From Schmidtea polychroa (Eukaryota): a stretch of 64,000 nucleotides of DNA. The position numbers were made by a program, and so were the translations under genes. The DNA lies in NCBI GenBank assembly GCA_044892525.1, contig CM097885.1, forward strand, positions 252,092,001-252,156,000, written 5' to 3'. Of the stretch, positions 12,001 through 63,417 are shown piece after piece. Position 1 is the first letter of the stretch, and the number at the start of each line of letters is the position of its first letter. The notes below the pieces were generated by a model. The model saw only the letters and a program-made list of their open reading frames with translations. It had not been told where the DNA came from and made no database searches.

Positions 12001-15000
12001 ATATTAGCTGGTACCAGTATTAATTAAATGTTAATTAATTAAATGGTTATATAAGCTAAAAAAATGAAATAAGTTTCGATTATAACAGTAATCCTTCTCA
12101 ATTTCTGAGAATTTAGCTGTTTCAATTTTTAAATGATTTTTGATTTTCCTTTTTTGATTTTCTCTCTTCTCATTGGATGAAATAAATAAAAATATTTGGA
12201 AAAGTGATTTATGACAAACTTTTTGCATTTAAACAAAAAATTATACTTATTCCGTAAAAGAAAGTCATATGGCAACAAATTCTCAAAAAGTTTCAAGTAT
12301 ATTGAAATATCCATTTCTTTTGCTTACATGTTAGAAACAGTGATCTCAAGTCTCATTCCTCAGATAATTAAGTAGTGTTAATTTCTGCATTTCTGGGTGA
12401 AAATTACTCATACAATGAATTAGATACTGATTTAAATAGTTTTGTCGGAAATTTTAAGAATTCCCTTTTTAAATAGTCTTTGCCTCGCATTGTTACTGTT
12501 GAAATAATTCCTAGGAAATTTCTTGTTGAAAAATGAAATCATTTTGCTAAACGCAAAACTTGTTATTCAACAAAATCCTTAAAGTAAAACGAAATTTCAA
12601 ATGGGAATTATTAATAATAAAATTATTATTAATAAAACTTTATTTTTTTAATTTTCAATTTTAAAATAAAATGATATCGTATTAGGTCGCAACTATCGTG
12701 TCATGTTTCCTGATGGTTTTTGTCCTGCTATTTATCGGACCGCTTTTTGAGAGCGTTCCAACAGTAAGTGGTCATGCAATATTTTTGTCAACTTTATCCT
12801 ATTTTAGTCCGTTTTATCGTCGATTATCGTCGTGTCACTCAAAAGTTTGCTCATGCAAATTACTGAAGTTCCAGGTTTATATAAAAATTCTAAATATGAC
12901 TTTGTTCGTTTCATTTTTGGAATTTGGTGAATATTTATCTCGTTTTTAAATTTCCAGGACGTTTGGATGGTTTCATTTTTGTCAACAGTTTTTTTGAATG
13001 TTCCATATGGATTAGTCGCTGGATTTCTATTTAGTCTGCTCACTATTATTATAAGATTACAGAATCCCCAGTCTCAGTTGCTTGGCCAGTTACCTGGAAC
13101 TGATCTCTATAGAAATATGAAAATATTTAAAAGTGTAAGTTACAATATTATATAACGGACGCTCTTTTTATCAGTAGATATATAAAGCAAGGATATATAA
13201 ATATATTTTAAATTTTTAAATTAAATTTTAAATGTTTAAAAATTTTTAAAATTAATTTAGTTATTGTAGGAATAATGTAATATTAAACAATTAATGTTGT
13301 TTTAATATTCTGAAAATGTGGTAAAAATAGAATTTGAAAAACGTTTTGTCTTACAGTTATAATTTTTAAAATTAATTAATTGTTTTTATTTAATAAAAAA
13401 GTTATTGAAACGCTCTTTGCAAAATTTTCTTCAATAAATTACTTCAACAGAAGTGAATTTTATATTTGAATACGTTGTTGAATTCAAGTGAACTCCAAGT
13501 GGATATACGCCATGTTTACAAGTTTGCAGATATTTTTTCTGTGATTTAGCTAATTTGCAAGTGATGTGATTTCCAATGTACCAGGGAAAGCATGCAATAG
13601 AGTTGAAGCAGCAATATTGTATACTTACCTGGCGCGAAGAGAAATCTTAGTACTGATGAGAGACAAAGCTCGAAACTAGTCTACTATTGGGATTTGCACT
13701 GGGTATCACAAAGTTTGTGATGTTTATATTATTTTAATGTTAGACATCCGTAAAAAAATGTTACTCCAAACGATAGTTTTTTGAATTTTTCTATGTTATG
13801 CTTTTCTTCTACATTACTTATCAAGTGCTTTATGTCATTTGTACTGGCAACCTTTAGACTTGATTTTTGTATTTCCTCGTCAAGCAGATTAAACTATATA
13901 TAATAGAAAATTCGCGGTTATTTTGATTTTTTGATTTTATAATGAAAGATTCTTTAGCCGTTCCACAAAATGAATAACATCTTCTTTTTACTTTCTTTTG
14001 CAGTCCAGATGATTGATCAATGAAATTAATTTCCATCTATCATTGCATTTTTACAGAGTCATCTTATTTCATCCTTTTATCGTTAGATATCGCAATACTT
14101 TTATAAAACGAATCTAATCTGTTCCGAGAAGAGTCAGATGATATATAATAATGTACAATAATGAAGTCTACATGCTTAGATGAGAGTTCATCAACAATCT
14201 CAGTACAATCACCAGATTAAGTGCCCATGCTTTCCTGGGAACATTGATTGCTGGAGGCATGACAGAAAAATTGCCGAAGTCCTTATTGTTCATAAATCAA
14301 TATTTTTAAATTTTTACTCAATTTTAAAGTTTTAGTATAATAATTTTGTTTTACTATATGGATAAATAAATATTTATAATCTATTATTTCTTTAAATTAA
14401 AGGCAGTAATATGAAATTTCATGAAATATTTATTTTATCCGGTTAAGTTGAATTTCCTTTGTCTGGTTTCCTAAACTTAATAATAACCTGCACAAATACG
14501 GATACTATAATGGACCTCTACCTACGTTATTACTTAAGGTTTATAAAGTAGAAAATTAGTTTTCAAGTATCTTTTATTAAAACAAAATAATATATTATAA
14601 CGATAGAATGACGTCAGTCAAGCTATTGTTCTGAATGGTAAAATAGTTGAAATGCTTTGACCTATTCTGCTAGCAGTGTGCGTTAGTTAGAAACTTTACG
14701 TTTGCGTATTGTCTGCCTTTATATTTTTATGAGATTGATGAAAGTCAAAATACAATTAAAAATCTCGGATCACTCACAAATTGAGCTTGCTATATAATTA
14801 ATGACATTAGTGGCATTGAATCCGATGTGAAATTTAGATAATTCATCACGTTTAGAAATCAAATATTTTCAGATATTTCTATTAGTGATTTTATGCAAAT
14901 AGTCTCTTTTTCTTACGATACCAAAACCATTGCTATTATGGAATTCTCAGAACTTGAAATCTAGCGACGTAGTTGTTTCTGTCTTACCTAAAGTCATAAC

Positions 15001-16460
15001 CAATAAACATTTCCTCATTTTTATTTTTGTGATATACAGAAAATATAAGTCTTTCTCACTAGGACATGTCACAGTGGAGGATCAGAAGGAACAATGTGAT
15101 TGAAATGAATTGCAAAAATTTATAATTTTCGTGTACCCATTATGAAAGACGGAATTCATTGTTGTTTAGTATATAGAAAAGTGAGTGAGAGTGATTTTTT
15201 GTTTATGAGCAAGATGCAGTTAATGTAAAGGTATATATATATATATATAAACTCTGATTACAAAAGTCAAGATCTCAGAATGAGAGACTTCAAAATCAAA
15301 GCGCTTGTTGTCTCAAATCTTCAAATATAAATTACTTCCTATTATTATGAAAAGGTTTGATCCATATATACTAAAAAAGAAATAATGTATGTTATCATAG
15401 CAATACTATCTCGCCTTAAAACATTAAAAGAAAACTTATGAAGCTTTATGAATTAACAAAATTAGTGATTGACTCTTTTCTTGGAACAGATTAGATTCTT
15501 TTATAAAAGTCTGACGATAAAAGGATGAAATAAGATGACTCTGTAAAAATGCAATGATAGATGGGAATTATTTTCATCGATCAATCATCTGGTCTGCAAA
15601 AAAAAGTAAAAAGAAGATGTTATTCATTATAAAATCACAAAATCAAAATAGCCGCGAATTTTCCGTTACATATAGTTTAATCTGCTTTAGAAGGAAATGC
15701 AAAAATCATGTCTAAAGGTTGGCGGCAGTACAAGTGACATATATCACTTGATAAGTAATGCAAAACTTCACGTTGCAAGCATAACATAGATAAAATCAAA
15801 AAACTACCGTTTGGAGCTAGCTACTTGAATTCAACAACGTATTCAAATATAAAATTCATTCTGTTAAAGTAATTTTAAATTATTACTTTAGTTATTTGAA
15901 AATTATTACTTATTTACTTTAATTTCTCGGAAGACATCGATTCTTAAAAATATCTTACATTAATTATTTCCCTTATTTAGTTTAATTTACTTTTATTTAC
16001 TTAATTTAAAATTATTACTTAAATTTCTCAGGTGCCCTAATTTACTTAATTTTAAATATAATACCATAATTTCTTCAAAATATCTTACGATAAATTTAAA
16101 AATTATTACTTAAATTTACTTATTTTTTTAAATTATTACACTAATTTCTCAAAAGACGTCGAATCTTCAAAATGTAGTACCATAAATTCCTGTACAAAAG
16201 TCCTGGGATAAAAAAAATACTTAGATTTTTTTTAACGAAGGCCTAAGTTTAATATAAAAGTCACTCAGACAAAATACTCCCCCAAATATAGTGTGATATT
16301 CACATGACCATGATAGTCCACTGGAGCACAGGCCTTTTTATTGAGAAAGATATTTAGGGTTTTTAAGGTAAACTTATTTATAGGCTTTTTATTCGAGACT
16401 AAAAAACCCTCTGACTATAGTGAGAGTTTCAGATTGACATTCAATCAAAAAAAAAAAAAA

Positions 16461-16496
<36 letters not shown>

Positions 16497-17400
16497 TATA
16501 AAAATAAATATTAAAATTAATTAATTTAATTTAATTAATTTACTTCACTAAAACAAAAATTTTAATTAATCAATGATTAATTTTCGAATACGGTATCATC
16601 TCGATCAAATTCATTTGCTATAAATCGTCAGTACCCAATGTTTAAAATGCTCTTGTCGGAAATCTTTTTAACATTGGCTTGTTCAAACTGTACGCAAACT
16701 TGTTAACCATTTCTGGATTTCTGTTTCCGAATTCGAAACTCGTCTCTTTAATTTTGTCATTTCACCGAAACCTTTTTTGTCTTCGGGATTCGTCCAAATC
16801 TTCTCCATTACAACAAGAAGATTTAAATTTAAAACTAGGTAATGAGGGGTTAGCACCCATTGTTTATGATTGATTTCTTATTACTCCACCTGATAATGAT
16901 AATGCCAATGGTATCAATGCGCCAATAAAACCTCCTTGTTGTTTAAATATATTTTTCTCATTTGTTTACGATTTTTATTATTTACTAACGACAGCAAAAT
17001 GTTTTTTGTGTTTATTCAATAAATGCTTTTTGGATTGCATGACAGAAATCNNNNNNNNNNNNNNNNNNNNNNNNNNNNNNNNNNNNNNNNNNNNNNNNNN
17101 NNNNNNNNNNNNNNNNNNNNNNNNNNNNNNNNNNNNNNNNNNNNNNNNNNNNNNNNNNNNNNNNNNNNNNNNNNNNNNNNNNNNNNNNNNNNNNTCCCCT
17201 TTGAATTTGAACGATATTGACGTTTTCATATACAGATACACACACACCTTTATGACCCCTAAAATAAAATATAATTTTCATAAATTTTAATAAAATTACA
17301 TGTATGTTCTTAAAAGTTGTTGAAATATTCCTTATTTATTGACCATTACACACATGCGCGCACACAGTCAATTTTCAACCTCCAAAGAATGTTTGTATGA

Positions 17401-17464
<64 letters not shown>

Positions 17465-20400
17465 TTTATATATATATTTCTTCAGTTATATACTTTTATT
17501 TTAATGTTACTAATCCATGGACAAACTGCTGCGAATTTGAGGACCATAAAGTAACATTCAAATATCACTTCATTGAATCGTATGTCCTAACTTTATCGAA
17601 ATGCTAAATTTTTTTTTCATATTTTATAACCTCTTTAATTCAATTTTTGTTTCAATCCTTTTTTTTCTTTAATAAATATTCGTTGAATGGCATTGCAGTC
17701 TTTCGCCATACTATAATGGTGGTTCGCAACATATACTCTAATTGCTTCAGAATGAACAATGGCATTGAATAAAAATGCGTCCTTGGCTGCACTTTTTGAT
17801 AAAATTTCATTTAAACTCTTTTTTTACGAAACTTTTAATTAATGATGCCTCAAAATTTTATTCCTAACGGTGCAACATATTAGATAGTTAATTAAACCAG
17901 TAGTATTACCCCTCTTACAACTTAGCCGTGCTCCATAACCATATCATTTAGGTCTGTTTTTTCTATTGTTTGAAAATGATTCCAAGCTTCAGATTTTAAT
18001 TTCTTATAATTCTTATAACCAATAATAATTATATTAGTTTGTCTCATTTTTTAAATATTAGAATTATTAATTCCTAACTACTCGATTATAATTACCCGCG
18101 CAGCTAACAAAAATGTTTCAAAATGTTTCAAACCTTACGTTTGATTTACAATATCTTTATCTTCATTTTGTGTATTTGCACTCACTGTATCTTTTATTTC
18201 TTTTTATTTTATATTCAATTGTTTTCAGGCCGTAGAAATACCAGGTATTAAAATATTTCGGTATGATGCTCCACTCTACTTTGCCAATGCAGAGCATTTC
18301 CAAACGAAATTGTACAAAAAAACTGGGTTGGATCCACGTAGAGTTAAACCATTGAAGAAAGACCTCACTATTGAAAAGAATATGAATCAAATAAACAGTG
18401 TTGAAGCAGTAGTGGATGAAACTACTACATTAAGAATACACGAAAACAATATCAAAGTTGAGATTACAGAAGAAAAGAACTCGGTCCCATCCATGGAAAT
18501 CAGTGACACTAAATATATTGTTGTTGACCTGTCGTCTGTTAATTATGTAGATAATGTTGCCATCAGGATTCTTGAAGAGGTTAGTAAAACTTTATACAAT
18601 TTGTTATTTTGTGTCAGAATTTTATATTTCAAATACTTTATCTGTTAGATTCTACTTATTAAGGAAATACTTTACCGCAGATAATCCTAATAATAATTTA
18701 TTTATTATTATAAGATAACGCCAATCAAACTTTTTTTTCACGATTAATTTCGACAATTTTCCAGTCATCATCAGGTGGGATATAATAACTCATTAAATTA
18801 AGGATTTTAAACAAATTTATTAATTATATATAAAAATATTTTTATTTTATAAAAAAATAATTATTTTTTAAAATTTTAACATTTAACATTTAATTTAATA
18901 ATTTAAAAAAATTTTTATTAATTATTTAATTTAATACAACAATTAATACATAGAATATAAAAAACCTATTTAAAATCTTATTTAAAAACGCTCAAAACAC
19001 AAGTATTTACAGCATTCTGCACATTTATTTTCGGATTCAATGATTTTATCAACAACGCCTCACAAATCACACGTTCCCAATATTTATCGAAATTTTACAA
19101 TAAGGGCTGTAAGATTAAAATCGGTATGTCTGATTTTAAAATTTTATTAAAAAATTTCAGTCTACGCTGGAAAGCAATTAGAAAATAAAAACGATATTGA
19201 ACGACTATAGCATACCAGTAGGTTCGACACTTCATTTGTCACTCAGGCAAATGACGAAGGGATTTTAGAAGAAGGACTGTGGAAAAAGAGAATGATAAAA
19301 GGAAAACTAACGAGTTTGAGAAACAAGATTCTCAATGATATAAATGGGAAGGAAGTCAGTGAATGATTGGATGAATATGAAAATCAAAAGGAGAGTCTAG
19401 ATGAAGAATTAGTGGATCTGATAACTATTAGTAAAAAATTGCAAAGATTGGATTTCACTGAAATGTTAGATAAAGATCTGCAAGAGATCGAGGGAAAACA
19501 TCAAATAATTGGGGCACTGATGGAAAGAAAAGCAAATCAATCTTTTAAGGAAGAGAAGGAAAATGAGAATGATGATACAATCAAGAAAAATAATTCAGTG
19601 CGTAAAATAAAACTAGAAAGTACAAAAGATTACAATACCTGTCTTTGAAGGCAAGATGAAAGAGTATGAGCCGTGGAAAGCAGCTTTTACTGCGTCTGTT
19701 GACGAAGCGGAAGGTGACGAGGTTGAAAAGATGTTTCACCTGCACAAGTACCTTCACGGAGGGCCGTTAAAGTTAATTGAAAATCTAGGATATTCGGCAG
19801 AAGCCTATCAAATGGCTAAAGAGAAGTTGGATAGGCGATATGGTGGGGATTAAAGGATATATCTATTACTTTAATACTGTAAAATAAATGGGGGGGGGGG
19901 ACAAGAGCTAATAGATAATCAGAATAGGGTGAAAAACCCGTGTTGTCAACAAAATTATTTAATTAGAGCTACACAAATTGAAAAATAAAGGAAACCCCGA
20001 GGCAAAAGGAATCCTAGTTTAATTTAAAAAATTTGTTAGCAAAGAAAACCTGGGGAGGTGTAAATAAAATTGGCAACCTCAAGAGGATCCCTTCCAATAA
20101 ACTAAGATAAACTAAAAGTGAATTCAATTATGAAGACGGTATAAAAGTTGGAGACGAGTTATTGAAATCCCCAGTTGTTCGAAGACAATTTAAAGAAGTA
20201 TAAGTATTAATTTTAAACCCAGTCAATATTAAATTGATTTTGAGCGTACCAGAAAGGAAATCTCTCATTGGAAGATTTGTCGAAACGCGAAAAGTTACAA
20301 GTGTTATTGAAGTGTTGTAAATAATTGCGGTAATTTTGAATAAACGTTATTATGTTGGGTTAGTTCGATTGATTTGAAAAAGGATATAGAGTAATTAGAA

Positions 20401-20961
20401 ACTAGTACCGACTTGTAACAAATTTCCAACAGATGCTTATGTATACATATTCCCCATTCAATTTTTAACTAAAATATCTAAATATAACTAAAAAATCTGA
20501 AAAACCTTTAAAGTAATTGTTAAGATTTTTTAAAAATCGAATCTAGAAATTGTATAGGATATTATTATGTGTTTGTGTTACAAATTGTTAATGAGTGTCA
20601 TTAATACGAGGAATCAAGCAAATAGTAACCAATAAATGCTTAAAAAGTCATTGTTATATTCGATGTTTTGTGAATTATTCTTCGAATTTTTTAATTTTAT
20701 CCTATTTAATTTGTTCGACAATGAAATGTGGCCAACCTAAATATTGAATGAAAATGACAATTGAACGTTCACATTCAAATATAGGTCTATTCCTCCTATC
20801 GGAAGCTGGGAATTCAACTCTTTCTAACGGGACCGAATCATAGAATCAGAAAAATGTTAACGAGATCCAAATTCGCCGAAGATAACCTAAACCGAATTCT
20901 GTACGTCACAATCCATGATGCGATTCTGTCGATATTGTTGATCAGAGATTTGCATTTGTAA
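1..20961 (+). CDS. SLC26 family anion transporter (prestin/SLC26A5-like), copy 1, 5'-partial
   Basis: Manually spliced in-frame exons with GT-AG ends: <1-130 (..[24 protein letters not shown]), 1885-2146 (..[32 protein letters not shown]), 12686-12763, 12808-12903, 12958-13134, 18229-18579 (STAS: [28 protein letters not shown]), 20785-20961 (..[11 protein letters not shown]). Motifs match the SLC26 TM8-TM14 and STAS regions. Confidence 0.93.
150..440. mobile_element. Foldback-type MITE (family with partial copies at ~1171-1335, ~34060-34204, ~35665-35828)
   Basis: Inverted repeat tttcaattttcacctctgatt (161-181) / aatcagaggtgaaaattgaaa (410-430), further internal inverted segments (gatatcgat, attgactatgaatcagt), and recognisable dispersed copies in the window. 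Confidence 0.7.
2256..2294 (-). ncRNA. Degenerate Penelope-type minimal hammerhead ribozyme
   Basis: Minus strand reads UAC CUGGUGA U GGUAG UAAAA CUGUC GAAA UAAA UC GUA. Stem I (UAC/GUA) and stem II pair, but core A6 is changed to G and stem III is imperfect; homologous to the 45908-45946 motif. Confidence 0.5.
2600..3130 (-). pseudogene. act: Actin pseudogene (N-terminal part), antisense in an SLC26 intron
   Basis: Fragments [67 protein letters not shown] and [15 protein letters not shown] are collinear with actin; they carry stops, frameshifts and deletions. Confidence 0.88.
3617..3848. mobile_element. piggyBac-type MITE
   Basis: TTAA at 3613-3616 and 3849-3852 flanking TIRs cactagatttacg / cgtaaatctagtg; subterminal palindrome gaaacccgtcaa-a-ttgacgggtttc at 3812-3836. 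Confidence 0.75.
5690..6863 (+). mobile_element. Tc1/mariner transposon, decayed transposase
   Basis: TA TSD (5688-5689, 6864-6865); 15-bp TIR cagtggcggacaaaa / ttttgtccgccactg; ORF remnant 6104-6478 with HTH_Tc3-like TIQRRL..KP..RL.FC..YKDW..W.KVMF(A)NE (first catalytic D lost). Confidence 0.9.
8102..8528. mobile_element. hAT-type MITE
   Basis: TIR cagggacgtaacaagg / ccttgttacgggcctg; 8-bp TSD cgtatagt / cgtataat (one mismatch). Confidence 0.8.
8980..9318. mobile_element. hAT-Charlie-like MITE, copy 1
   Basis: TIR cagtgtttctcaaac / gtttgggaaacgctg; perfect 8-bp TSD tcctaatt; second copy at 23028-23326. Confidence 0.9.
10147..11400 (-). mobile_element. LTR-retrotransposon gag remnant (frameshifted, two CCHC knuckles, no pol)
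   Basis: ORFs 10931-11257, 10416-10928 ([14 protein letters not shown]) and 10147-10440 ([14 protein letters not shown]); PBS-like TGGCACC.. on the minus strand ending at 11400; no paired LTRs found. Confidence 0.75.
13440..14130. repeat. Dispersed repeat with an inverted second copy at ~15480-15875
   Basis: 15480-15875 reverse-complement aligns to 13440-13490 plus 13765-14125. The ~270-bp segment 13499-13762 is absent from the second copy and is bounded by the direct repeat actccaa (13492-13498, 13763-13769). Confidence 0.8.
13648..13686 (+). ncRNA. Intact minimal type I hammerhead ribozyme (GUC cleavage after 13681)
   Basis: UAGUA CUGAUGA GAG ACAAAG CUC GAAA CUAG UC UACUA: perfect core, 5-bp stem I, 3-bp stem II and palindromic stem III ACUAGU. 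Stem I extends via AAAUC(13642-46)/GAUUU(13691-95) and ACCUGGCGC(13627-35)/GCACUGGGU(13696-704). Confidence 0.85.
16461..16496. repeat. (AAT)n microsatellite after a poly-A run
   Basis: Direct reading. Confidence 0.95.
16576..16808 (-). pseudogene. Polinton/Maverick-type integrase N-terminal fragment
   Basis: [34 protein letters not shown] / [35 protein letters not shown] matches the Polinton integrase pattern IYYDP..FG..KL..I..WL..TLHKP..FP...GIDDLWQADLVDM..YSK.N; contains a frameshift and stops. Confidence 0.7.
16864..17050 (-). pseudogene. Polinton small basic 'QxGGF' protein remnant, immediately upstream of the integrase fragment
   Basis: [51 protein letters not shown]: a basic helix followed by a QxGGF plus hydrophobic stretch, as in Polinton small ORFs and adenovirus pX-like motifs; truncated by an N gap. 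Confidence 0.55.
17403..17456. repeat. (TA)n microsatellite
   Basis: Direct reading. Confidence 0.95.
17640..18000 (-). pseudogene. Ac-like hAT transposase fragment (BED zinc finger region)
   Basis: [11 protein letters not shown].. / [18 protein letters not shown].. / [24 protein letters not shown], read across frameshifts. Confidence 0.5.
18712..19165 (-). mobile_element. Penelope-like element 3' fragment with 5' inversion and hammerhead
   Basis: Minus strand encodes [34 protein letters not shown] (GIY-YIG tail) followed by a 3'UTR homologous to 45880-46130; 19105-19160 ([18 protein letters not shown]) lies in the opposite orientation. Confidence 0.85.
18739..18777 (-). ncRNA. Penelope-type minimal type I hammerhead ribozyme
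   Basis: CAC CUGAUGA U GAC UGGAAAAUU GUC GAAA UUAA UC GUG: intact core, stem I CAC/GUG, palindromic stem III AUUAAU. Confidence 0.75.
19250..19853 (+). mobile_element. BEL/Pao retrotransposon gag remnant (DUF1759-like)
   Basis: Coiled-coil ORF 19367-19648, then [53 protein letters not shown] (19656-19853). Confidence 0.75.
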
Positions 20962-24508: not shown

Positions 24509-27500
24509 CAGCCCGTACCGTGACACCTTTTGACGGGGGGCCCAGACTCTCATTAAAGGGGCCAGTAATTCTCGTGTAAACTAAGTATTTTATGAAAACA
24601 GACTAGTCACTACTCACACTTTGCACTCCGAAATGTTCAATTTAAAAAAAAGGAAAGCAAAATCGACATTTTGTCTGAGCATTATTTTGCTACATTATTG
24701 CATATACTAGTATATAGGAAATGATTTTCGCACATTTTTTAGGAACAAACACAAAAAACAAAGCTGCATGTATTTGCACGACGGACAATTGGACATACAA
24801 AGACAGAACACACAGTCACACAGATTTGAAAACTAAAGGTGAGTGCAATAGAAATTACACAGGAACTAGATCCAGAAAAAAGAAATTACGTGTGAGATAT
24901 CGACATGACTCAAAATAGCTGCAGTCGACGATTTTTCATTTCATGAAACCGCCGAAGAAACTCATCAGATTTGATGTTATTACTGATGTCACTTTCAAAT
25001 GAGAGCAATACAAGGTTGGCTTTACGAAAATGGCTCATCGACGTACGAAAGGGAGTTAAGACACGAGATAAAGTACTGAAAGTCGCCTCACATGTGACAG
25101 TTGAAGCACCGATTGTCAGTGCAGAAGCTGCAAGACGATAGACAGATGGAAAAGCATCTCGGTATGAGTACAGTTCTTGCACTAACTGATGAACGTTTGT
25201 CACAGTACTGGCTCTCTTCAATAGGAAAACCTTTGCAGTTTCAAATTCATGTTGGGTTTCGCTTAGGTCCACGCCACACAGTGTCGCTAAAGTCTTTAGA
25301 TCCTCAATATTCAAAAAGTTTGCGTGATCAGTCTTGAAACATACAAGAGACTTATAAAGGCTTCTGTTGGTGACACCGAAGCGTTTTGTTAGTTCCTGCA
25401 GAGTCCTATCAACGACTTCGTAATACATCTGGCGATATGCGCATCTGATAGGCAAGGCCTGGTGTTCTGGCTGTCCCACAGATCCGAACACAATGAAGTT
25501 GTCTAATTTTGAGTTCATCTGAGTTCTTCTTCTTTTTGGTGTCTGTTCCATATCCATTTGACCTTCGAATTTCCCAAAAAGAACTTGGAATTCCTCTTCA
25601 TTGCGTAGGCTGCGAATGCGCTCTATGACGGCATCCATAACATCACATGCTGAAGAAAGGTCCATTGCTTGACCCTGCTAGCTATTGTTGGCTGCTTCAA
25701 GGATAGTCAGCAATGAGAGCACCATGTGTGCAATGAACTGAAACTCCACTTCATTGACTCGATGCAAAAGTCCAGTAGCTTCCAATTGAATATCAATTGA
25801 AAAGTGAGAATGTCTACTAGAACACATCTCAAGCAAATTCACAATTGTATCATAATTAGTTGTTATTGCCTGAGTCGTCTGCAAGTGTCCTGTCCAACGA
25901 TGTTCCATGAGCCGTGTCAATTTATCGCCTTGATATATGGCCGCAACCTTAGGATATGACAAAAATGTGTATAAGTTTCTGCATATGTCGAAGAAGTCCC
26001 GCAGTTTTTGGCACTCAGAAACGGCACACACAACAACCAAATGCAACTTGTGGTTGAAGCAATGGACATACGGAATTTCTTTTTGTAGACGCTCCTGAAG
26101 CAAGGCCTGCACCCCACTATGCTGTCCAGACATAACAGCGGCTCCATCATAGCATTGGGAAATTATATTTTTAGGATCCAACTGAGCCTCTTTCAAGGTT
26201 GTCAAAATTACATCTGTGAAGGCCTCTGCATTGAGAGCACTTGTTCGGGAAATGCAGATTAAGTGCTCCTGAGGTTGTCCTGCTGAGACAAACCTTATGG
26301 CAATCGACACATTCTCAGTCCCTGTTCGATCTTTGGTACCATCCACCTTCAGAGTAAAATATTCAACATCCGCAGACTTGCACTTCTTAACAATTGACTC
26401 GTGCACTTTTGATGCCATTAACGCGATAATTTCATTTTGAATTCGAGGTGATGTGTACGTGATGATTCGAGCCAGCTCAGGATTTTTCTTAACAGTGTAT
26501 TCGAAGAGACGTAAAAATAGACCACACGGAAGCTTATCATCCTCATCAATATCATCTCTACTGAAACTGTCACCACGAAAGGCTAATTCATTTGTCACAA
26601 GAAACTTTACAACGTCAACGATTTCGTTGACATAATAACGGTTGTTCTTCAGCTGTGTTTCATTAATCAAAGTGCAAACTTCCTCACCTTTTTCACATCT
26701 CAGCTGTTTCTCTTTCCAGCGTTCCATGGCATGGATGTGGCCAGCAGAAGATTCATGCTTTTGAAAACCTTTTCCTTTTTCTAAAGCCGATTTCCAATTT
26801 CGGAATCCTCCTGTTCTGAAAGCACTTTCGCCAGCAGAGCCGGGCAATGAAAATTTTCTACAGCAAAAGCAGAAGACTGCATCTTTCTCAATAGAGTACT
26901 CCAAATATGGTCTTCCATTATACCACACAGACGAAAATGAGCGTTCCCTTGAACCAAACGAAGTCTTTGGGAAATTTACATCAGTTGGCTGGCGTGGCAT
27001 TTCTTCACCCAGATCACATTTAGTAGATGACAGAGTCTTAGCAGGTGCACAAGAAGATGAGGACATCACTGCACTGTCACGGATACATGAAATAGCAGGT
27101 ACAGATGAAGGACTAGCACAAGTTGAGGACATAGTAGCAGAGATACTATCACTGGATGAAGTGACTGAAGTCACAGAATTCTTTGGAATGACTTGGAAGA
27201 AATTCATGATACTCTTTTGTGTCGACATGTTCTAATACGATGAAAATAATGTTACAAAATATGATCAATTAACATGTCACTCTGCCATAGGAGTGAGTTG
27301 AGTATAATGACATGTGATGTGCTCTCATTGGCCTATCTCTCTACCATCGTATAAAGACCACAATGCACCCACTCCATGCTCTGACACTCAATCATGCCTC
27401 CATTGCGTTGTTACTGCCTGTGAGGCAGGAAAGACAGACAGCACGCACCCTATCCACGCCACCGACATCACATGCCAGTCTCTTCCAGTGAGGCAGATAG

Positions 27501-28977: not shown

Positions 28978-31900
28978 ATGGGCGAAGCTCCGAAATACAA
29001 AGTCGAACGGCCGATTTATTCATATGCAACTTTTACGAATGATTATGCGGAGGTGGAAAAACCTTTTGACATACTGAAAACTTTAAATTACAAATCAAGA
29101 CTTAAACAGCTCACGTTTCCGATGGTACTTTATTATATTATGCCATTTCCATTCATTATGGCGTCTTTCTATAAATTCCGGTTCATTTTTAATGACATCA
29201 TTTCGGGCATTACGATGCTCGTGTTTCACATTCCACAGGGTAAATATATTTACTGTTGAATTTATTGTTGAAATATCTTCTTGGTTTATGAAGGAATGGC
29301 ATTCGGTTTGTTAACTGGAGTTCAGCCAATAAATGGTTTGTACGCATCGTTTTTCCCACCAATTATTTACTTCTTATTTGGAACTTCTCGCCACATTTCA
29401 CTCGGTATGTTTCCTAAATGATTCGTTGAAGGATCTTTTATGATTTTAACAGGAACATTCTCAATCATGAGCCTCCTATCAAGCGTTCCGGTTATGAGAG
29501 AGGCTAAAAGGCCACTTAATAACAGTTTGATGGTTAACGGTACAATGCCTCAAATAATGAGTTATGAGATGGTAAAATTGCAAATAGCTATCGCTACAGC
29601 TCTGCTGGCTGGAATTATACAGATTATAATGGGTTTATGCCAATTGGGATGTATCATGAATTATGTTAATATTACTTTGATTGGTGGATTTACAACGGCT
29701 ACGGCATTTCATATAATTCTTTCTCAACTTGGATCTATGCTGGGCTATTCTGTTAAGAGATATTCAGGAGTTGGTGAGTTACCCTACGTAAGTTCCTTTT
29801 ATTGTCTAAATTTGAAAATATTTACATGATTGAACCTTTATGATGGACATCCCATAATAGAAAAGAAAACTCCTGAGATTGATTCTGCCTAAAAATCAAC
29901 AGAAATATAAGAAATATGAGAAATCCTTGTAGGGAAATCCAATTGTCATCTCAAAGATAAATCAGAAATGTAATATAAAAGTAAAAAATGAAAACAACTG
30001 ACGCTTCAAGAGGGACAATATAAGCATATGCACTATCAAATAGAATGGTAAAGAAATAATATTACTTGATAACAGGCAGGGATTAAAATAAAATATTCTC
30101 ATTATATTTTGAAATATATAATCAAGGTAAACTATTTTGTGGTCAATTCTGATATTGTATAGAAGGGGGGGGGGTGTTGTTCTTTTTTGGGTGCCCCAGA
30201 ATCGGTCAACTGGGATTGTGTGTGTGTGTGTGGTTATTTGTTTTTTTCTTTGAGCTACCAGAAAATAGTTGAATCTAGATTTGGTTTTTGGAATTGTTTA
30301 GGAATCGTGTTTGTTTGTAATGATAGGATTTTTTGACAGGAATAAATATTTGGACGTCTCTGGTATTGTTTTTGGATTTAATTTGACTGTGGAAAATATG
30401 ATCAATCAAGATTGTGCTCTTGTGACTCTATGATGAAAATGTTTTAAATGATATCAACAATACCTAATAATTTATGAACCACCTTTATATTGGTATGATA
30501 TATAGATTTAACATTATAAGAGGGAGCAAGATTTAATTTTATTAGATCCTCATGTATATCATTATATAGGATTTACCAGTGTTGATAAGCTATTGAATTG
30601 TTAGAATTTAAATATAAATGCTATTAGAGTTTATAATGATTGGTATCAGTGGCGTAACTAGTGGACGCAGGACCCTGCGTTGCGGGGGCCCAAAATTATT
30701 ACTAAAAAATATTTACAATCATTTTCTGAAACTTTTCCCGCAGTTATATTTGCCTACAAACATAAAACTATCATTGAATAGCGACTGTTGTGAATAACTA
30801 TGTATTAAACTTTAACCGAAAAATTTAAGTGGAAATATTTTACATTGCGCGGGGGGCCCAAATTTTGAAGTTCCGCCACTGATTGGTATCCGATATGTTT
30901 ACATGGTTTCACATACCGTTTATCGATTTTTGTTAATTTGTTTATGATATAACATTACTAACATTACCAATCTATTGAAGCAGAATATACCGTAGTTCAG
31001 CATATATGGGAAAAAACTAACTGTAACTCGCTTTTGGATTACATGATGATTTATCTTAAATTAGATGTCATTTTACTTTCAGATTACTTGCAACAGTTAG
31101 GGAAAAATCAATAGTCCATAATTGATTAAAACTCTACCTTTTTAGGTATTCTGGGAATATTTTGTAATTCTGCTCTCATAGAAAATTCTATTGAATTACT
31201 CCAAAATATGGAAATTTATAATTTCTTTGAAGGTAAGATTCGCAGGGGTTTACTTTCTGTTAATAAACATCATGTAAAAAAATTGAAAATGTTAAATAAA
31301 ATAAAATTTTGGATGATTGTGTGAATGTTGAATTGGAACTGCTGACATTCGGTTATATCTTCCTGATAGATTTAAAAATACTTTTATATATTCACGATGA
31401 ATTGGACGAATTTTCCGTTACTACTGAAAAGATGTGTGCGTCCGGCTCAAAAGTGGAGGAGTTGATGCTTATGCACTATCCCAAGAAAAAATAATCCCAT
31501 GTAAAAGTAATAAATATTTATCGCAACATTCGATACAAGCAGCCTGCAATAATCAAGAGTTACATTGACACAAATACAAACTTAGAGTAGTATAACAAAA
31601 AACTCTTGATAAAAATATTTATTTAACTATGACAAATTTAGGAAAGCGTTTTAATTTAAGGTTGTGTATCTCTACCCAAAAACTTTAAACATATTGCACA
31701 AAACCAAAATTTTAAGAAAAGCAGTAAAAATATTTTTATTTTTAACTTTAATATTACATTTGTCTTTTATCTTTGAGATGACAATTGGATTTCGCGTACA
31801 AGAATTTTTTATATTTCTTAGATTTCTGTTGATTTTTAGGCAGAATCAATTTGATGAGTTTTCTTTCCTAATGCCCACCTTATGAATTTGTAGGCTTTTC

Positions 31901-34900
31901 AAAAATTAAAATATAAACATTTAAAAAAATTTTTAAATTGTCTATGTAAATAGTCATAGGAGACTTTTTTTAATAAATATTTTATGATATTACTTATTAA
32001 AAGAAGTTTCTATGAGCTAATTAAAGAAGCTTTAAAAATTTTTTTATTGTTTTGTTTTGAATTTTAAAGGAAATTTAATTTAAAAAGATTTTTTAAATTC
32101 TTCAAAAAATTTTATTTTGATTCAGTTTATTCTTTGCCAATGAGAAGTAAGAAAAAGGAAATAAAAGAGAAGATCAAAAAGCATTTGAAAATTGAAAAGT
32201 CCTATTTTTATAGTTGGAAATTCTTTCATTTTATTAAATATTAAATATAAGGTATACTTCGCAGCAAAAGGAATTTGATTTTTTTCAATCAAGCCATCTT
32301 GTATAGAATTAAATTCTACCTATACATTGTTTGAGTGAATTACAACCTTGAAACGACTGCGATGACGTAGTTTTTGTGAAAATTGAGAAACCCCACTGGG
32401 CTGGAGTCCACACATCTATTTATTTCTAGTACATAATATGCACAGAGGACTGAATATACTTAACCCTTTATAGGACAAATTAATTATTTTGGAATTTGAA
32501 TTTTAACTAATATATTTTAATATATTTATTGTCTAGATAAAATAAATTTGATAAATAAAAATAAAAGTATTTCTTAGTCCGTCATAAAAATCAAAGATTT
32601 CATCGGTTGATATATGGACCAAAGATTGTTTGGAGTCGTGTAAGAAATAAATTTATGTAATAAAAAAGAGATTTTGTACAAAATTTTATTACAAAAAAAT
32701 ATAAAAATTTCAAACCAGTATTAATTATATTTTTTTACTACCATTCTTGTGAAATGGTTCAAAATACAAAAGACACAACGGCACATTAAACTGTTTACAT
32801 ACACATACAGTTCTTTTTGGATCTTTTACAGTACTATAAAAGGCACTTACTTTAGTTATGTTGGCCTAAACAAGAGGATTTCGATGTAACAACGAGATAT
32901 TCACGCAGTTAGAACAATTAATTAACCAAAGAGCGTTCTCGACAAAGTAGTGAAGTATTAAAGTTGATGTTTATATGGGCAGTATTAGAAATATAGACCT
33001 TAACCCTCTCCGTATATTTGTCGAATATATTCGACATTAAAGCAAGATGTCACTTCCAGTTTCATAGGCCATTGCAAAAGTACATCGTTTTCACCGCGCA
33101 TTATGAAAAAGAAAACAGGAAGATGTGTCCCTTTTCCAGCTTTGAATCCATCGGGATGAAGCTGAAGGCACATTTTGTAACCGTTTTTGTGGGAATAGAA
33201 CGGGTCACTATAAATATCAGCATTATTTTTTACACGGAGAGGGTTAAAGCAACTGATTAACCGATTCCAGCCTTTGCCCTATAAAGGGTTAATAAGTACA
33301 TCTAGATACCTAAAATATTTTTACTGAGTTTAATTTGTTTTATTTTTATTTCAGAAATTATATTTATTTTTATCAAATATAAAAAATGTCCATCAAATCA
33401 CTTTGAGCCTGTCCATCAGTTGCTTGTTGATTTTGTCATTATTTACAGTATTTATCAATCCTGTTGTTAAAAAGAAGTTTGATGTCCCAATTCCTATTCA
33501 ACTGATTTTAGTAATTTTGGGTACAATAATTTCATACTTCGGCTCATTTGACAGCAAGTATTCAGTAAAGATTGTCGGAACCATTCCAAAAGGGTAAAAC
33601 AGTTTATTTCAATTAAATTAATTATTAAAAAAATTATTTAAATTAGTAATCAAATATTTTTGTGTAAATGCCATAATAGAAATTCTTATGTTGTGTTTTA
33701 ATTGTTTAAATTGTTATTAGATTTCCCTCACCGATGGTTCCAGATGTTAAAATATGGCCAAAAATTACTTTGGATGCAATCGCATTGGCAATTTTTGCTT
33801 TTGTTATGAATAGCTCTTTGGCAAGGATATATGCTTTGGAATTTGGTTATGATGTAAATTTTAATCAAGAACTTGTGGCATACGGATTATCAAATGTGTT
33901 TGGATCGTTTTTCCAATGTATTCCGACTTCAGCATCAATGACGAGAACTGCAGTCGTAGTAGATGTTGGCATGAAATCCCAGGTTATGTGGTTTACAATT
34001 TATTCATATTATTAAGGGCATGTAAAACGTTTAAAAAACGGTTCAAAACACTTGAATTTAGCCGACAAATTCACTTGAAAAAGCCAGTGCCGCAAATTCG
34101 TGAATATCCGAAACATCGATATATTTACTGATTCATAGTCAAGCATTTTAATAAATACAATGGAAAAGAAATCAGTGGTGAAATTGGAAAAAAATTTCTT
34201 ATAAGACAAACGGTATAGCCCTAAAAAGCAGAATAAATATAAAAATGAATTAATTTATATTGCAAATAAAAGTGAAGCATAAAATTTCGGCACCTTTGAT
34301 CTGAATTATAATTAAATTAAAACTAAATTATAAAGTATCTAAAATTTAATAATTAACCCTCTCCGTATATTTGTCGAATATATTCGACATTAAAGCAAAA
34401 TGTCACTTCCAGTTTCATAGGCCATTGCAAAAGTACATCGTTTTCACCGCGCATTATGAAAAAGAAAACAGAAATATGTGTCCCTTTTCAAGCTTTGAAT
34501 CCATCGGGATGAAGCTGAAGGCACATTTTGTAACCGTTTTTGTGGGAATAGAACGGGTCACTATAAATATCAGCATTATTTTTTACACGGAGAGGGTTAA
34601 TATTTAAAACAAAATATCTAATTCAAAGAATTCAATTATTATTTGCACAATATAATTTTGTTAGTAGTATAAATAATATGAAATAATAATTATAATTATG
34701 TTGCCGTAATTCATAAGATATTACAGATTTTATTCCAGATTTGATGTTACGTTTATTTTCGTTTACTTTTCCTCTATCTATCTGATATAAGCACGTGTTT
34801 TATCTATATTTTTTATTTTTTTTTGTTGTAGAAAATCTATTGCATGAAATACATGCATAGAAAAGAGTGTAATTTTAACATTTCGATTTTTTGTGTAGGG

Positions 34901-36692
34901 GGGGGGGGGCGCTGGATAATTTTACTGTTGTAAAGGAGGCGATTCTTTCAATATGGTTAAGAAACACTGATCTATCATATATGTTTTTATGTCTTACAAT
35001 TACTCAATTTTCAGAGAAAGCACAAAAATAAAACTTTTTGATTAGTTCGCAATATTCGTAATCATCAATAAATGATTGGTTGGGTTATATTATCAAAAGC
35101 TATCTTATTATATTATAAAGAAATTATTTTAAAAGAAACTGCAATCACTTAAAGTATTTACATTTAGTTGGCCAGTGTAGTATCTTGCATTCTGATGATA
35201 TTTGTGTTATTATTCATCGGACCTTTATTTGAGCATTTGCCGAAAGTAAGCATTCTTTCTTTCTACATTTTAATATCTTCATTAAAAATATTGATAATAG
35301 TGTGTTCTGGCAACAATTGTTGTGGCGTCATTGAAAGGAATCCTTTGGCGAGTCAAAGAGCTTCCTAAACTATATAGTTTGTCAAAACTTGATTTTGTAA
35401 GTGATATGATATTTAATTGAATAAGAAATTTTTCTTTTGTTTTAGGAAGTTTGGATCGTATCCTTTATGGCAACAATTCTTTTAAATGTACCTTATGGGT
35501 TATTTGTTGGATTCATATTTAGCTTGATGACAGTTTATATGAGGTTTCATAATCCAAAGAGTTCAATTCTTGGAAACATACCGAATACAAATATATATAA
35601 AAATATCAAGACTTACAAAGATGTATGTACTAGAAGATCAAAAGTTTATTATCATTATTGCTATTGCTTTCCATTTTCACCTCTGATTCCTTTTCAATTG
35701 ACATTGTATTTATTAAAAAATTGACTATGAATCAGTAAATATATCGATGTTTTTTTTCAAAATCACTTAAAAGAACCTGTTCCCAAAATTCGTGAATATC
35801 AAAAGAATACATCGATAAGACAATTTTTNNNNNNNNNNNNNNNNNNNNNNNNNNNNNNNNNNNNNNNNNNNNNNNNNNNNNNNNNNNNNNNNNNNNNNNN
35901 NNNNNNNNNNNNNNNNNNNNNNNNNNNNNNNNNNNNNNNNNNNNNNNNNNNNNNNNNNNNNNNNNNNNNNNNNNNNNNNNNNNNNNNNNNNNNNNNNNNN
36001 NNNNNNNNNNNNNNNNNNNNNNNNNNNNNNNNNNNNNNNNNNNNNNNNNNNNNNNNNNNNNNNNNNNNNNNNNNNNNNNNNNNNNNNNNNNNNNNNNNNN
36101 NNNNNNNNNNNNNGACAGTAGAAATACCAGGTATCAAAATATTTCGATATGAAGCTCCTATATATTTCGCTAATGCTAACCATTATCAAAATAAATTATT
36201 CAAAAAGGTTCGAGTTGACCCTCGTATTTTAACCGACCTATTGAGTAGTCCGAATTCGGAGGTTTACAAAACTAAAACCGAAACCTCAATGTTGCGTCCA
36301 GTGGAAAAACCATATAAAGTAATGAAAATGACTGGGATCGATGGCATAATTATTATTTTATATTTTAGGACTATGAGTCGAATAAAAATCTGAAATTCAT
36401 AATTCTAGATTTCCGGCCGGTCAACTACGTAGACAATGTTGCCGTTACAGTATTGAGCGAAGTTAGTCAAGTTTTGTAAATTGTATCATCTTTAATTCCC
36501 CCGGTTCAGATTTATAAACTGTACCAAGAGATAGGAGTCTTTGTGTACATTGCCGAACCAAATTTCAGTGTTAAAAGGTCTTTGACCAAAGCTGAATTTG
36601 CAAAAGATCGTATTGACAAAATAACATTTGTCTCAATCCATGACGCAGTTTTGAAAATTTTATCAACATTGATGTACCTTGACAAGATGTAA
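28978..36692 (+). CDS. SLC26 family anion transporter (prestin/SLC26A5-like), copy 2, complete
   Basis: Exons 28978-29239, 29294-29404, 29453-29787, 33355-33593, 33721-33982, 35168-35245, 35301-35396, 35446-35622, 36115-36318, 36369-36461, 36510-36692, all GT-AG (one acceptor partly in an N gap) and frame-consistent. Signature [47 protein letters not shown] motif and STAS domain present. Confidence 0.95.
30647..30881. mobile_element. hAT-type MITE
   Basis: TIR cagtggcgtaact / agttccgccactg; perfect 8-bp TSD attggtat. Confidence 0.9.
32464..33288. mobile_element. piggyBac-type MITE (outer), host of a nested MITE
   Basis: TTAA at 32460-32463 and 33289-33292; TIR ccctttataggacaaa / tttgccctataaaggg. 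Confidence 0.8.
33004..33243. mobile_element. 240-bp piggyBac-type MITE, copy 1 (nested)
   Basis: TTAA TSD; TIR ccctctccgt / acggagaggg; near-identical copy at 34357-34596. Confidence 0.92.
34357..34596. mobile_element. 240-bp piggyBac-type MITE, copy 2
   Basis: TTAA at 34353-34356 and 34597-34600; same TIRs and length as 33004-33243. Confidence 0.92.
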
Positions 36693-62190: not shown

Positions 62191-63417
62191 TTACATCTTG
62201 TCAAGGTACATCAATGTTGATAAAATTTTCAAAACTGCGTCATGGATTGTGACAAATGTTATTTTGTCAATGTGATCTTTTGCAAATCCAGACTTGGTCA
62301 ATAACTTTTTCACTCTGAAATTTGGTTCGGCAATGTACACAAAGACTCCTATCTCTTGGTACAGTTTATAAATCTGAACCGGGGGAATCAAACATAAAAC
62401 AATTTACAAAACTTGACTAACGTCGTTCAAAACTCTAACGGCAACATTGTCTACGTAGTTGACCGGCCGGAAATCTAGAATTATGAATTTCAGATTATTA
62501 TTCGACTCATAGTCCTAAAATATTAAATTATAATCTTCGATCCCAGTCATTTTCATTACTTTATATGGTTTTTCCACTGGACGCAACATTGAGGTTTCGG
62601 TTTTAGTTTTGTAAACCTCCGAATTCGGACTACTCAATAGGTCGGTTAAAATACGAGGGTCAACTCGAACCTTTTTGATTAATTTACTTTGAAAATGGTC
62701 AGCATTAGCGAAATATATAGGAGCTTCATATCGAAATATTTTGATACCTGGTATTTCTNNNNNNNNNNNNNNNNNNNNNNNNNNNNNNNNNNNNNNNNNN
62801 NNNNNNNNNNNNNNNNNNNNNNNNNNNNNNNNNNNNNNNNNNNNNNNNNNNNNNNNNNNNNNNNNNNNNNNNNNNNNNNNNNNNNNNNNNNNNNNNNNNN
62901 NNNNNNNNNNNNNNNNNNNNNNNNNNNNNNNNNNNNNNNNNNNNNNNNNNNNNNNNNNNNNATACATCTTTGTAAGTCTTGATATTTTTATATATATTTG
63001 TATTCGGTAATTTTCCAAGAATTGAACTCTTCGGATTATGAAACCTCATATAAACTGTCATCAAGCTAAATATGAATCCAACAAATAACCCATAAGGTAC
63101 ATTTAAAAGAATTGTTGCCATAAAGGATACGATCCAAACTTCCTGAAACAAAAGACAAATTTCTTATTCAATTAAAATCATGACTTACAAAATCAAGTTT
63201 TGATAAATTATATAATCTTGGAAGTTCTTTTATTTGTGAAAGAATTCCTTTTAATGACGCCACAATGATTGTTGCCAGAACACACTATTATCAATATTTT
63301 TGATGGAGATATCAAAATGTTGAAAGAAAGAATGCTTACTTTCGGTAAAGGTTCAAATAAAGGTCCGATGAATAACAATACCAACATCATCAGAATGCAA
63401 GATACTACACTGGCCAA
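62191..63417 (-). CDS. SLC26 family anion transporter, copy 3 (inverted close paralogue of copy 2), 5'-partial
   Basis: Exons 63417-63340, 63284-63189, 63142-62966, ~62760-62560 (start in an N gap), 62514-62422, 62373-62191; same intron positions as copy 2; upstream exons lie beyond 64000. Confidence 0.92.

Follow-up and report, generated by a model that had tools for sequence, protein, structure and literature searches.

Hammerhead ribozymes of Penelope-like elements and retrozymes

The type I hammerhead ribozymes of animals and of Penelope-like elements (PLEs) have as their hallmark a short, palindromic helix III, and they function as dimers; most hammerheads of this kind are single motifs that have been attributed to truncated PLEs, and helix II comprises 4 bp in the canonical animal motifs and 6-8 bp in the PLE minimal hammerheads (Cervera and de la Peña, 2014; PMC4209133). 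The non-LTR retrozymes likewise carry type I hammerheads with a very short palindromic helix III (Cervera and de la Peña, 2020; PMC7229834; Li et al., 2026; preprint 10.64898/2026.07.22.740005). They are recognised as tandem arrays in which at least two units, about 150-450 bp long, each contain a type I hammerhead, and dispersed monomeric copies are reported to be common (Li et al., 2026).

The element described here is a 264-bp insert found in a 64-kb stretch of DNA, the whole of which is referred to as the window. It shares the very short palindromic helix III of the non-LTR retrozymes, its length and its GC content (35%) fall within the range published for them (PMC7229834; 10.64898/2026.07.22.740005), and like them it lacks LTR, PBS and PPT and is flanked by a target-site duplication of more than 4 bp (7 bp in this case). 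In contrast to the tandem families, however, it is a single unit with a helix II of 3 bp instead of the usual 4, and it fits only the monomer retrozyme derivatives of the 2026 preprint (10.64898/2026.07.22.740005). With the PLE minimal hammerheads the insert has in common the dimer-dependent design and the palindromic helix III, but neither their long helix II nor their unpaired base between A9 and G10.1 is present (PMC4209133), and no similarity was found between the insert and PLE terminal sequences.

A short insertion in an intron of an SLC26-like gene

The intron that received the insert is about 5.1 kb long and belongs to a gene resembling those for SLC26 proteins and sulfate permeases; insert and gene have the same orientation (Table 1). 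A preliminary description of this DNA had noticed a segment bounded by ACTCCAA direct repeats and missing from a sister repeat, and both observations hold. The sister is, however, an inverted copy and not a direct one, and at the place that matches the target-site duplication it has a single CTCCAA. The insert marks a recent insertion into the intron.

Table 1. Positions in the window of the insert, of its predicted elements and of the surrounding host sequences
Feature	Position	Strand	Basis
Upstream exon of the SLC26/sulfate-permease-like host gene, donor GT at 13135	12958-13134	+	Paralogue tblastn, Pfam on neighbouring exons
Left arm of the host inverted repeat, split by the insertion	13436-14136		blastn of left against right region, repeat search
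Target-site duplication ACTCCAA, left copy (7 bp)	13492-13498		Same heptamer after the insert
Insertion (264 bp, 35% GC), probable solo copy of a hammerhead-bearing retroelement	13499-13762	+	Missing from the sister arm
Predicted imperfect hairpin of about 20 bp, with the U1-like stretch as its 3' arm	13581-13632	+	Minimum-energy fold of the whole insert
12-mer ATACTTACCTGG, identical to the consensus U1 snRNA 5' end	13621-13632	+	Direct reading
Type I hammerhead motif	13648-13686	+	Direct reading, structural descriptor, partial Rfam alignment
Segment able to pair with 13626-13634 (alternative long stem I)	13696-13704	+	Local fold only
Near-perfect palindrome, 7-bp hairpin	13705-13721	+	Direct reading, local fold
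Target-site duplication ACTCCAA, right copy	13763-13769		Direct reading
Right (inverted) arm of the host repeat, empty site near 15816-15823	15470-15875		Repeat search, blastn
Following host-gene exon (STAS domain), with the acceptor TTTTCAG before it	18228-18648	+	Pfam, paralogue tblastn

Neither a second copy of the insert (blastn) nor a tandem array was found in the window, and a repeat search detected no direct repeats within the insert itself. Exact-pattern scans of viral, metagenome and prokaryotic genome contigs gave no copies, comparison of the open frames of the insert, treated as pseudo-proteins, with assembled sequencing runs gave no further ones, and a full-text search of papers for the hammerhead sequence gave no match. 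Because no second family copy was found in these searches, there is no covariation, no family proof and no identified autonomous partner. The scan of viral contigs returned only a phage hammerhead, which is unrelated. A hAT ORF that was looked up had no exact record; a protein 98% identical to it is present in a JGI metagenome and in three assemblies of sequencing runs, whose accessions were not found in any paper.

Several other types of short mobile element were considered for the insert and rejected: a tRNA-derived SINE, as ARAGORN detected no tRNA-like head; a MITE with terminal inverted repeats, as the ends of the insert are not complementary; and a tandem retrozyme array, as only one unit is present. 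Folded as a circle, the insert is predicted to be 65% paired, which is only modestly better than shuffled sequences (z about -2.3). Its sense strand also includes a run of six T at 13533.

An intact-looking type I hammerhead near the 3' end of the insert

Direct reading of the insert confirms the hammerhead proposed in the preliminary description, with a predicted cut at 13681|13682, after C17 (13681). Helix I is formed by UAGUA (13648-13652) and UACUA (13682-13686) and provides the open end of the molecule, as expected of type I. It is followed by the core CUGAUGA (13653-13659), which supplies C3 to A9, by a 3-bp helix II (GAG/CUC, loop ACAAAG, 13660-13671), by the GAA of G12-A14 (13672-13674) and by helix III, a loopless palindrome ACUAGU that runs from A15.1 to U16.1 (13675-13680). 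The G10.1-C11.1 pair is present, position H17 is a C, and both direct reading and a structural descriptor show that all core positions as well as helices I and II are present.

No hammerhead model of Rfam matched at gathering level. When matches up to E<=10 were admitted, the sole ribozyme among them was RAGATH-1-hammerhead, with 19.4 bits against a threshold of 56.3 and an alignment that covers the core while helix III is deleted; such a sub-threshold score is expected, since helix III is absent as a hairpin. When two hammerhead monomers were cofolded, the outcome was a trivial extended duplex, which was left out of the argument.

A probable retroelement origin

Penelope-like elements and retrozymes form a known class, and the insert is an ordinary member of it. 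Specifically, it is probably a solo retrotransposed copy of a non-autonomous hammerhead element of the PLE/non-LTR-retrozyme lineage, inserted in sense in the SLC26-like intron and carrying a 12-mer that does not derive from U1. The relation to retrozymes and Penelope elements had been put forward in the preliminary description, and three lines of evidence support it: the type I hammerhead with its loopless palindromic helix III, the short AT-rich insertion with its target-site duplication, and a PLE remnant with minimal hammerheads in the same genome. The remnant, which lies in the window, is degraded and 5'-truncated and carries a second hammerhead family, with covariation in helix II and a palindromic helix III; a GIY-YIG domain in its PLE relatives was missed by Pfam and seen by direct inspection of their C-termini. 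In this PLE family the hammerhead is about 50 nt from the 3' end. The insert is arranged alike, as a 5'-truncated insertion in which the hammerhead comes close to the 3' end, the cut site being 81 nt away from it. A blastn search within the window detected no similarity between the insert and the remnant.

From the published families, we infer a retrotransposition route for the insert, its dependence on dimers and its inactivity as a monomer. Elements of this type would be transcribed as multimers with one hammerhead per unit. As the loopless palindrome ACUAGU cannot close as a hairpin, the hammerheads would pair as dimers, and the resulting double ribozyme would cut after C17. Cleavage would free a unit-length RNA, which may circularise and could be copied back into DNA in trans by the reverse transcriptase/endonuclease of a PLE. 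With no second hammerhead close by to pair with, the insert can be expected to cleave itself poorly, and this would account for its tolerance in sense orientation within a pre-mRNA. At present, the value of the insert is mainly one of annotation, as one more dispersed copy of a hammerhead-bearing retroelement. It also shows that dimer-dependent hammerheads are represented in this genome by at least two families.

The U1-like 12-mer and its predicted pairing

Upstream of the hammerhead, 13621-13636 reads ATACTTACCTGGCGCG, and its first 12 bases agree at 12/12 positions with the U1 5'-end consensus AUACUUACCUG, the 11-nt form of which is quoted in PMC3033335. The preliminary description placed the 12-mer correctly, and the 27-nt offset from helix I that it gives, counted from 13621, is also right; the 12-mer itself lies 16 nt upstream of that helix. 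The window has a single occurrence of it, compared with 0.006 expected for the two strands together.

Identity with U1 snRNA (Rfam RF00003) is limited to these first 11-12 bases (PMC3033335), and the stem-loops and Sm site of U1 are absent. The Rfam U1 covariance model found no match in 13400-13900 even at E<=10, and 13621-13800 includes no Sm-like site. Moreover, the motif is not at the 5' terminus of the unit, where a single-stranded U1-like end would be expected; it starts at base 123 of the 264 of the insert and is predicted to be paired. An origin of the 12-mer from U1, or a U1-like activity, is therefore not supported by anything found here, and neither is the U1-headed chimera initially envisaged.

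In folds of the whole insert, the 12-mer pairs upstream with 13581-13593, with a pairing probability of at least 0.83 for 10 of its 12 bases, and this pairing survives when the active hammerhead helices are forced; folded alone, 13576-13640 reaches -22.6 kcal/mol. The minimum-energy fold of the whole insert is, like that of the circle, only modestly better than shuffled sequences (z about -2.3). The 12-mer is thus predicted to be the 3' arm of an internal hairpin and not a free donor-binding arm, and cleavage would therefore not expose it, contrary to the earlier suggestion that self-cleavage unmasks a donor-complementary sequence. The long stem I that had been proposed between 13626-13634 and its downstream complement, together with the hairpin of the near-perfect palindrome, which is indeed present, does form when 13615-13725 is folded alone. 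This local structure is not better than shuffled sequences (z -1.2), and the stem is unused in the whole-insert folds. The 12-mer may be either a chance match or a splice-signal-like remnant.

Other readings of the insert

An unlikely explanation, although the first of the alternatives, is that a sense-strand intron of PLE type ends here, with the stretch as its 3' part and the likeness to U1 as a by-product. In this layout, UACUUAC would be the branch region, and the AG that follows it at a distance of 23 nt (13649-13650) falls on the 5' edge of helix I. This recalls the Penelope intron of Drosophila virilis, which terminates where helix I begins, so that spliced and unspliced RNA carry different hammerheads (PMC4209133), and introns also occur in the pseudo-LTRs of PLEs (PMC8557442). 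The branch-like A13627 stands at a typical distance from AG13650 and, should the branch region be functional, chance need supply only about 5 more bases of the match with U1. However, the insert has no convincing sense donor upstream, the best candidate being CAA|GTGATG at 13561, the tract before the AG is purine-rich, and the short introns of the host gene have no clear branch consensus of their own; the reading is, besides, based on one sequence.

Less likely again, the motif would be a functional minus-strand splice donor, CCAG|GTAAGTAT (13629|13628), through which part of the element would be exonised in an antisense transcript. This alternative, already raised in the preliminary description, draws on a perfect extended consensus of the type used by real introns of this genome (ACA|GTAAGTGG, AGT|GTAAGTTA), on the fact that CAGGTAAGT occurs nowhere else in the window, and on candidate acceptors (…AATTAG and …CACAG) that can be picked out by eye on the same strand, about 80-90 nt further downstream. 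Its surroundings nonetheless lend this alternative little support: the only gene identified here is on the plus strand, no phase is open for more than 17 codons upstream of the putative donor, and the window offers no evidence of a minus-strand gene or promoter.

It is very improbable that the hammerhead is a look-alike produced by chance in AT-rich DNA and the insert some other short repeat. The short helix II, the missing Rfam match at threshold and the failure to find family copies, and thus covariation, in the sequences searched would all fit such a view. The structural descriptor, however, recognised only this one site in the 64-kb window, and among 400 first-order Markov sequences of 64 kb each an equal match (helix I of at least 5 bp) appeared in two, or 0.005 per window. 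In addition, the motif sits inside a discrete mobile insertion, and the genome has other dimeric hammerheads of the same design, with compensatory changes. The hammerhead is not a chance match.

The least probable of these explanations is that the 12-mer was selected as a mimic of the U1 5' end: in the element's sense RNA, this donor-complementary arm, coupled to the hammerhead, would act as a guide or as a decoy for splice sites. Improbable to the same degree, such a mimic would let the RNA of the element engage the 5' splice sites of its own intron or of host pre-mRNAs. Should other copies prove to conserve the U1-like stretch together with the ribozyme, the insert would gain in importance, as the recognition of splice sites would then be tied to self-cleaving RNAs of retroelements. 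The overlap of intron and hammerhead in the Drosophila Penelope hints at such a connection, which, to our knowledge, has never been shown. Apart from the rarity of a 12/12 match so close to helix I, the idea of a mimic is favoured by the sense orientation of the insert within a pre-mRNA whose real donors are of GTAAGT type. The nearest precedent for a guide arm, to which the mimic would be analogous, is provided by the endonuclease-lacking PLEs Athena and Coprina, in which the hammerhead likewise adjoins short stretches complementary to a cellular sequence (PMC8557442). In these telomere-attaching elements, however, the stretches are repeated reverse-complement telomeric units at chromosome ends, whereas the insert has a single intronic 12-mer and shows no sign of targeting, its target site ACTCCAA not being donor-like. 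The lack of a U1 body and of an Sm-like site, the internal position of the motif and its predicted pairing in every whole-insert fold also speak against a mimic, and after a cut at 13681 the 12-mer would remain paired, at a distance of about 50-60 nt from the newly created end. A metagenome contig (L060) carries an independent minimal hammerhead with the 11-mer 19 nt before its helix I, but this hammerhead shares no other homology with the insert, and one such co-occurrence among metagenomic hammerheads is close to chance (0.02-0.2 expected by our own estimate). The 11-mer of L060 arises at the junction of an 18-nt tandem duplication.

An Intronic Insertion Carrying a Type I Hammerhead

The repeat around the insert has a sister copy in inverted orientation, which lacks the 264 bp found between the two ACTCCAA copies and displays one CTCCAA only at the junction. 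The duplication and this empty site thus identify 13499-13762 as a discrete insertion that is flanked by a target-site duplication of 6-7 bp and came later than the repeat that it interrupts. This bears out the preliminary description, which had reported a segment flanked by actccaa and missing from the sister repeat, except that the sister copy is inverted. Neither a tRNA-like head nor tandem repetition was detected in the insert (35% GC), and there is no second copy within the 64-kb window.

The window also holds three copies of an SLC26/sulfate-permease-like gene, recognized by translated paralogue comparison and by their Pfam Sulfate_transp and STAS domains. In the first copy (plus strand), position 13134 closes an exon whose donor is AGT/GTAAGTTA, and the following exon starts near 18228, after TTTTCAG. 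The intron between them, which spans about 5.1 kb, therefore contains the insert in sense orientation. This intron is swollen by repeats, the neighbouring introns of the gene being just 41-51 nt long with GTAAGT-type donors; introns this short are a feature of all three paralogues. The equivalent intron of the other two paralogues is largely a masked N run (35829-36113; 62759-62961). The second paralogue contains 267-bp direct repeats (32981-33247 and 34334-34600; 96% identical, 1353 bp apart), which may be a further small element of the LTR-like type or the product of a segmental duplication.

From 13621, the plus strand reads ATACTTACCTGGCGCG, and 27 bases further lies a complete type I hammerhead, present as previously described; its C17 predicts cleavage between 13681 and 13682. 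The perfect palindrome ACUAGU is unable to close on itself because a 2-nt loop would result, and helix III is therefore possible only between two hammerheads. Animal type I hammerheads have a helix III of 1-2 bp with a palindromic loop of 2-4 nt and work as dimers (Cervera and de la Peña, PMC4209133).

A structural descriptor (CUGANGA, helix II of at least 3 bp, GAA, A-U closing pair, H17 and helix I, with either a hairpin or a palindromic helix III) matched exactly one site in the window, 13648-13686. Only 2 of 400 first-order Markov sequences of the window's size and composition matched it with a helix I of at least 5 bp, which argues against a chance motif. Rfam gave zero matches at gathering thresholds over the entire window; under permissive settings, the sole ribozyme match in 13400-13900 was RAGATH-1-hammerhead (19.4 bits for a threshold of 56.3, E 0.99), in an alignment where the core is matched and helix III deleted. 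The curated models therefore miss this loopless variant, a known limitation for such motifs. In sequence terms, 13648-13686 is a real hammerhead of known kind.

Features of the window, with positions, strand and basis or remarks
Feature	Position	Strand	Basis or remark
Helix I	UAGUA 13648-13652 with UACUA 13682-13686	+	sequence read
Hammerhead core CUGAUGA	13653-13659	+	sequence read
Helix II, GAG/CUC, 6-nt loop	13660-13671	+	sequence read
GAA	13672-13674	+	sequence read
Six-base palindrome ACUAGU	13675-13680	+	sequence read
C17	13681	+	predicted cleavage 13681/13682
Target-site duplication ACTCCAA	13492-13498 and 13763-13769		sequence read
Host repeat, left arm	13436-13489 and 13764-14136		repeat comparison
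Host repeat, right arm (inverted)	15470-15875		80-96% identity to left arm
SLC26-like paralogues	12686-20937; 29440-36689; 63430-62194	+; +; -	paralogue comparison and Pfam
Second-family hammerheads	18774-18739; 45943-45905; 48648-48684	-; -; +	
Degraded canonical Penelope-like element (PLE)	45864-48730		inverted terminal copies flank reverse-transcriptase/endonuclease remnant; one minimal hammerhead in each
Third terminal copy of PLE	18695-19160	-	

Origin and Folding of the U1-Like Stretch

All bases of the 12-mer at 13621-13632 agree with the consensus 5' end of U1 snRNA, 11 nt of which are quoted in PMC3033335; the 12-mer occurs once in the window, versus 0.006 expected. Past these 12 bases, no feature favours a U1 interpretation, which is not supported: no Rfam U1 match was obtained in 13400-13900 even at E<=10, and no Sm-like site was found across 13621-13800. 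In addition, the 12-mer starts at base 123 of the 264 of the insert, which is therefore not the 'U1-headed' chimera that had been proposed.

Folded alone, 13615-13725 adopts the long stem I of the preliminary description (13626-13634 with 13696-13704, z -1.2); in the whole insert, this is predicted to be replaced by a hairpin of about 20 bp, in which the 12-mer is the 3' arm and pairs with 13581-13593. This pairing is common to the linear, circular and hammerhead-forced (core open) predictions, with a computed energy of -22.6 kcal/mol for the region 13576-13640 and a predicted pairing probability of at least 0.83 for 10 of the 12 bases. The hammerhead-competent fold is predicted just 3.8 kcal/mol over the minimum. 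Self-cleavage, suggested earlier to unmask a donor-complementary arm, would thus leave the U1-like stretch paired and unfreed in these models.

Candidate explanations for the presence of so exact a 12-mer are a sense intron remnant, an antisense donor, or chance. A splice-signal origin in the sense orientation would be reasonable, since in the Drosophila virilis Penelope the 5' edge of helix I is where the intron stops (PMC4209133); in the insert, the AG at 13649-13650 is preceded, 23 nt away, by a branch-like UACUUAC. Alternatively, CCAG/GTAAGTAT on the minus strand may splice a non-coding antisense exon: it is a perfect donor, of a type in use in the S. polychroa genome, and CAGGTAAGT at this site is unique in the window, but the identified gene is on the opposite strand and at most 17 open codons precede the site in any phase. 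As for chance, an 8-base subset of the motif, TTACCTGG, occurs at 13090-13097 in the exon immediately before the host intron, showing that sub-strings of the motif arise by chance here.

Search for Relatives of the Insert

Further copies of the insert family were found neither by pattern scans of viral, metagenome and prokaryotic genome contigs nor by pseudo-protein search with the open frames of the insert, and its hammerhead was not found in published full texts. A scan for hammerhead cores preceded by the U1 11-mer at a distance of 15-45 nt yielded 72 metagenome and 15 viral loci, nearly all of them ordinary coding sequence without hammerhead helices. One genuine minimal hammerhead was present among them, in contig JGI24703J35330_11632427 (L060; 1336-1410, minus strand), with helices I and II of 5 and 6 bp, a bulged base in helix II, and the palindrome ACAUGU. 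Its 11-mer, 19 nt upstream of helix I, arises at the junction of an 18-nt tandem duplication, and the element has no similarity to the insert beyond the 12 bases selected for. Hammerheads number thousands per invertebrate genome (PMC4209133), and chance co-occurrences in the metagenome collection would amount to 0.02-0.2, a rough inference from published densities and not a measured value; the L060 case makes a real association only slightly more likely. At the opposite end of this contig (1-122), a long palindrome whose building block is the 3' half of a comparable hammerhead (…CGAAACATGT…) suggests a head-to-head element junction. In two IMG/VR viral contigs (L093, 6710-6742; L094, 2966-2998), the same complete hammerhead is present without any difference; its helix III forms a long hairpin, and it is of the ordinary phage type and unrelated to the insert.

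Penelope-Like Elements and Other Repeats

PLE terminal repeats contain minimal variants of the hammerhead, most of which appear in genomes as single motifs and are ascribed to truncated PLEs (PMC4209133). In a second hammerhead family of the window, CUGAUGA is followed by an unpaired U, helix II shows compensatory changes, and the palindrome of helix III is AUAUAU or AUUAAU. Between the copies at 45943-45905 and 48648-48684, which are inverted, 46173-47656 (minus strand) matches residues 318-819 of P0292, an 831-residue relative, in four pieces and two frames at 46% identity, the N-terminal 317 residues having no counterpart in the remnant. In the relatives, which are about 830 residues long, a reverse-transcriptase domain occupies the centre and a GIY-YIG-type motif pair the C-terminus, with two cysteines between the motifs in two of the three inspected; this arrangement is given as diagnostic of the PLE endonuclease (PMC8557442). 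The P0292 contig also bears a second-type hammerhead just upstream of the P0292 ORF. Canonical PLEs whose dimer-type hammerheads lie close to their 3' ends are thus present in the S. polychroa genome. Similarity within the second family stops about 50 nt past the cut site; in the insert, 81 nt separate the cut site from the 3' end. No tie between the insert and an autonomous element was established.

Classical type I motifs are also found in non-LTR retrozymes, which are AT-rich tandem units of 150-450 bp with target duplications >4 bp (PMC7229834) and which, according to a 2026 preprint, derive from PLE terminal regions, with common and dispersed monomers (10.64898/2026.07.22.740005). The insert fits these elements as a monomeric copy, but differs from them in not forming a tandem array. 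It is probably a retrotransposed solo copy, whose ribozyme would need a partner and hence be largely silent in the intron.

Other elements are present in the window. A hAT-family transposase gene (24910-27228, minus strand; DUF4371 and hAT dimerisation domains), whose reading frame is interrupted once, shares 98% identity with a protein of 779 residues that is found in a JGI metagenome and in three sequencing-run assemblies, and a second, more diverged copy lies at 39563-40953 (minus strand). What looks like a short non-autonomous LTR-type element (42250-44999, plus strand) consists of two 300-bp direct repeats, 98% identical, enclosing ORFs in which a zinc knuckle and an aspartyl protease of retroviral type are present but no polymerase. 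Finally, inverted repeats of at least 500 bp (51345-52016 and 53488-54193), 97-98% complementary and about 1.5 kb apart, each contain masked N runs.
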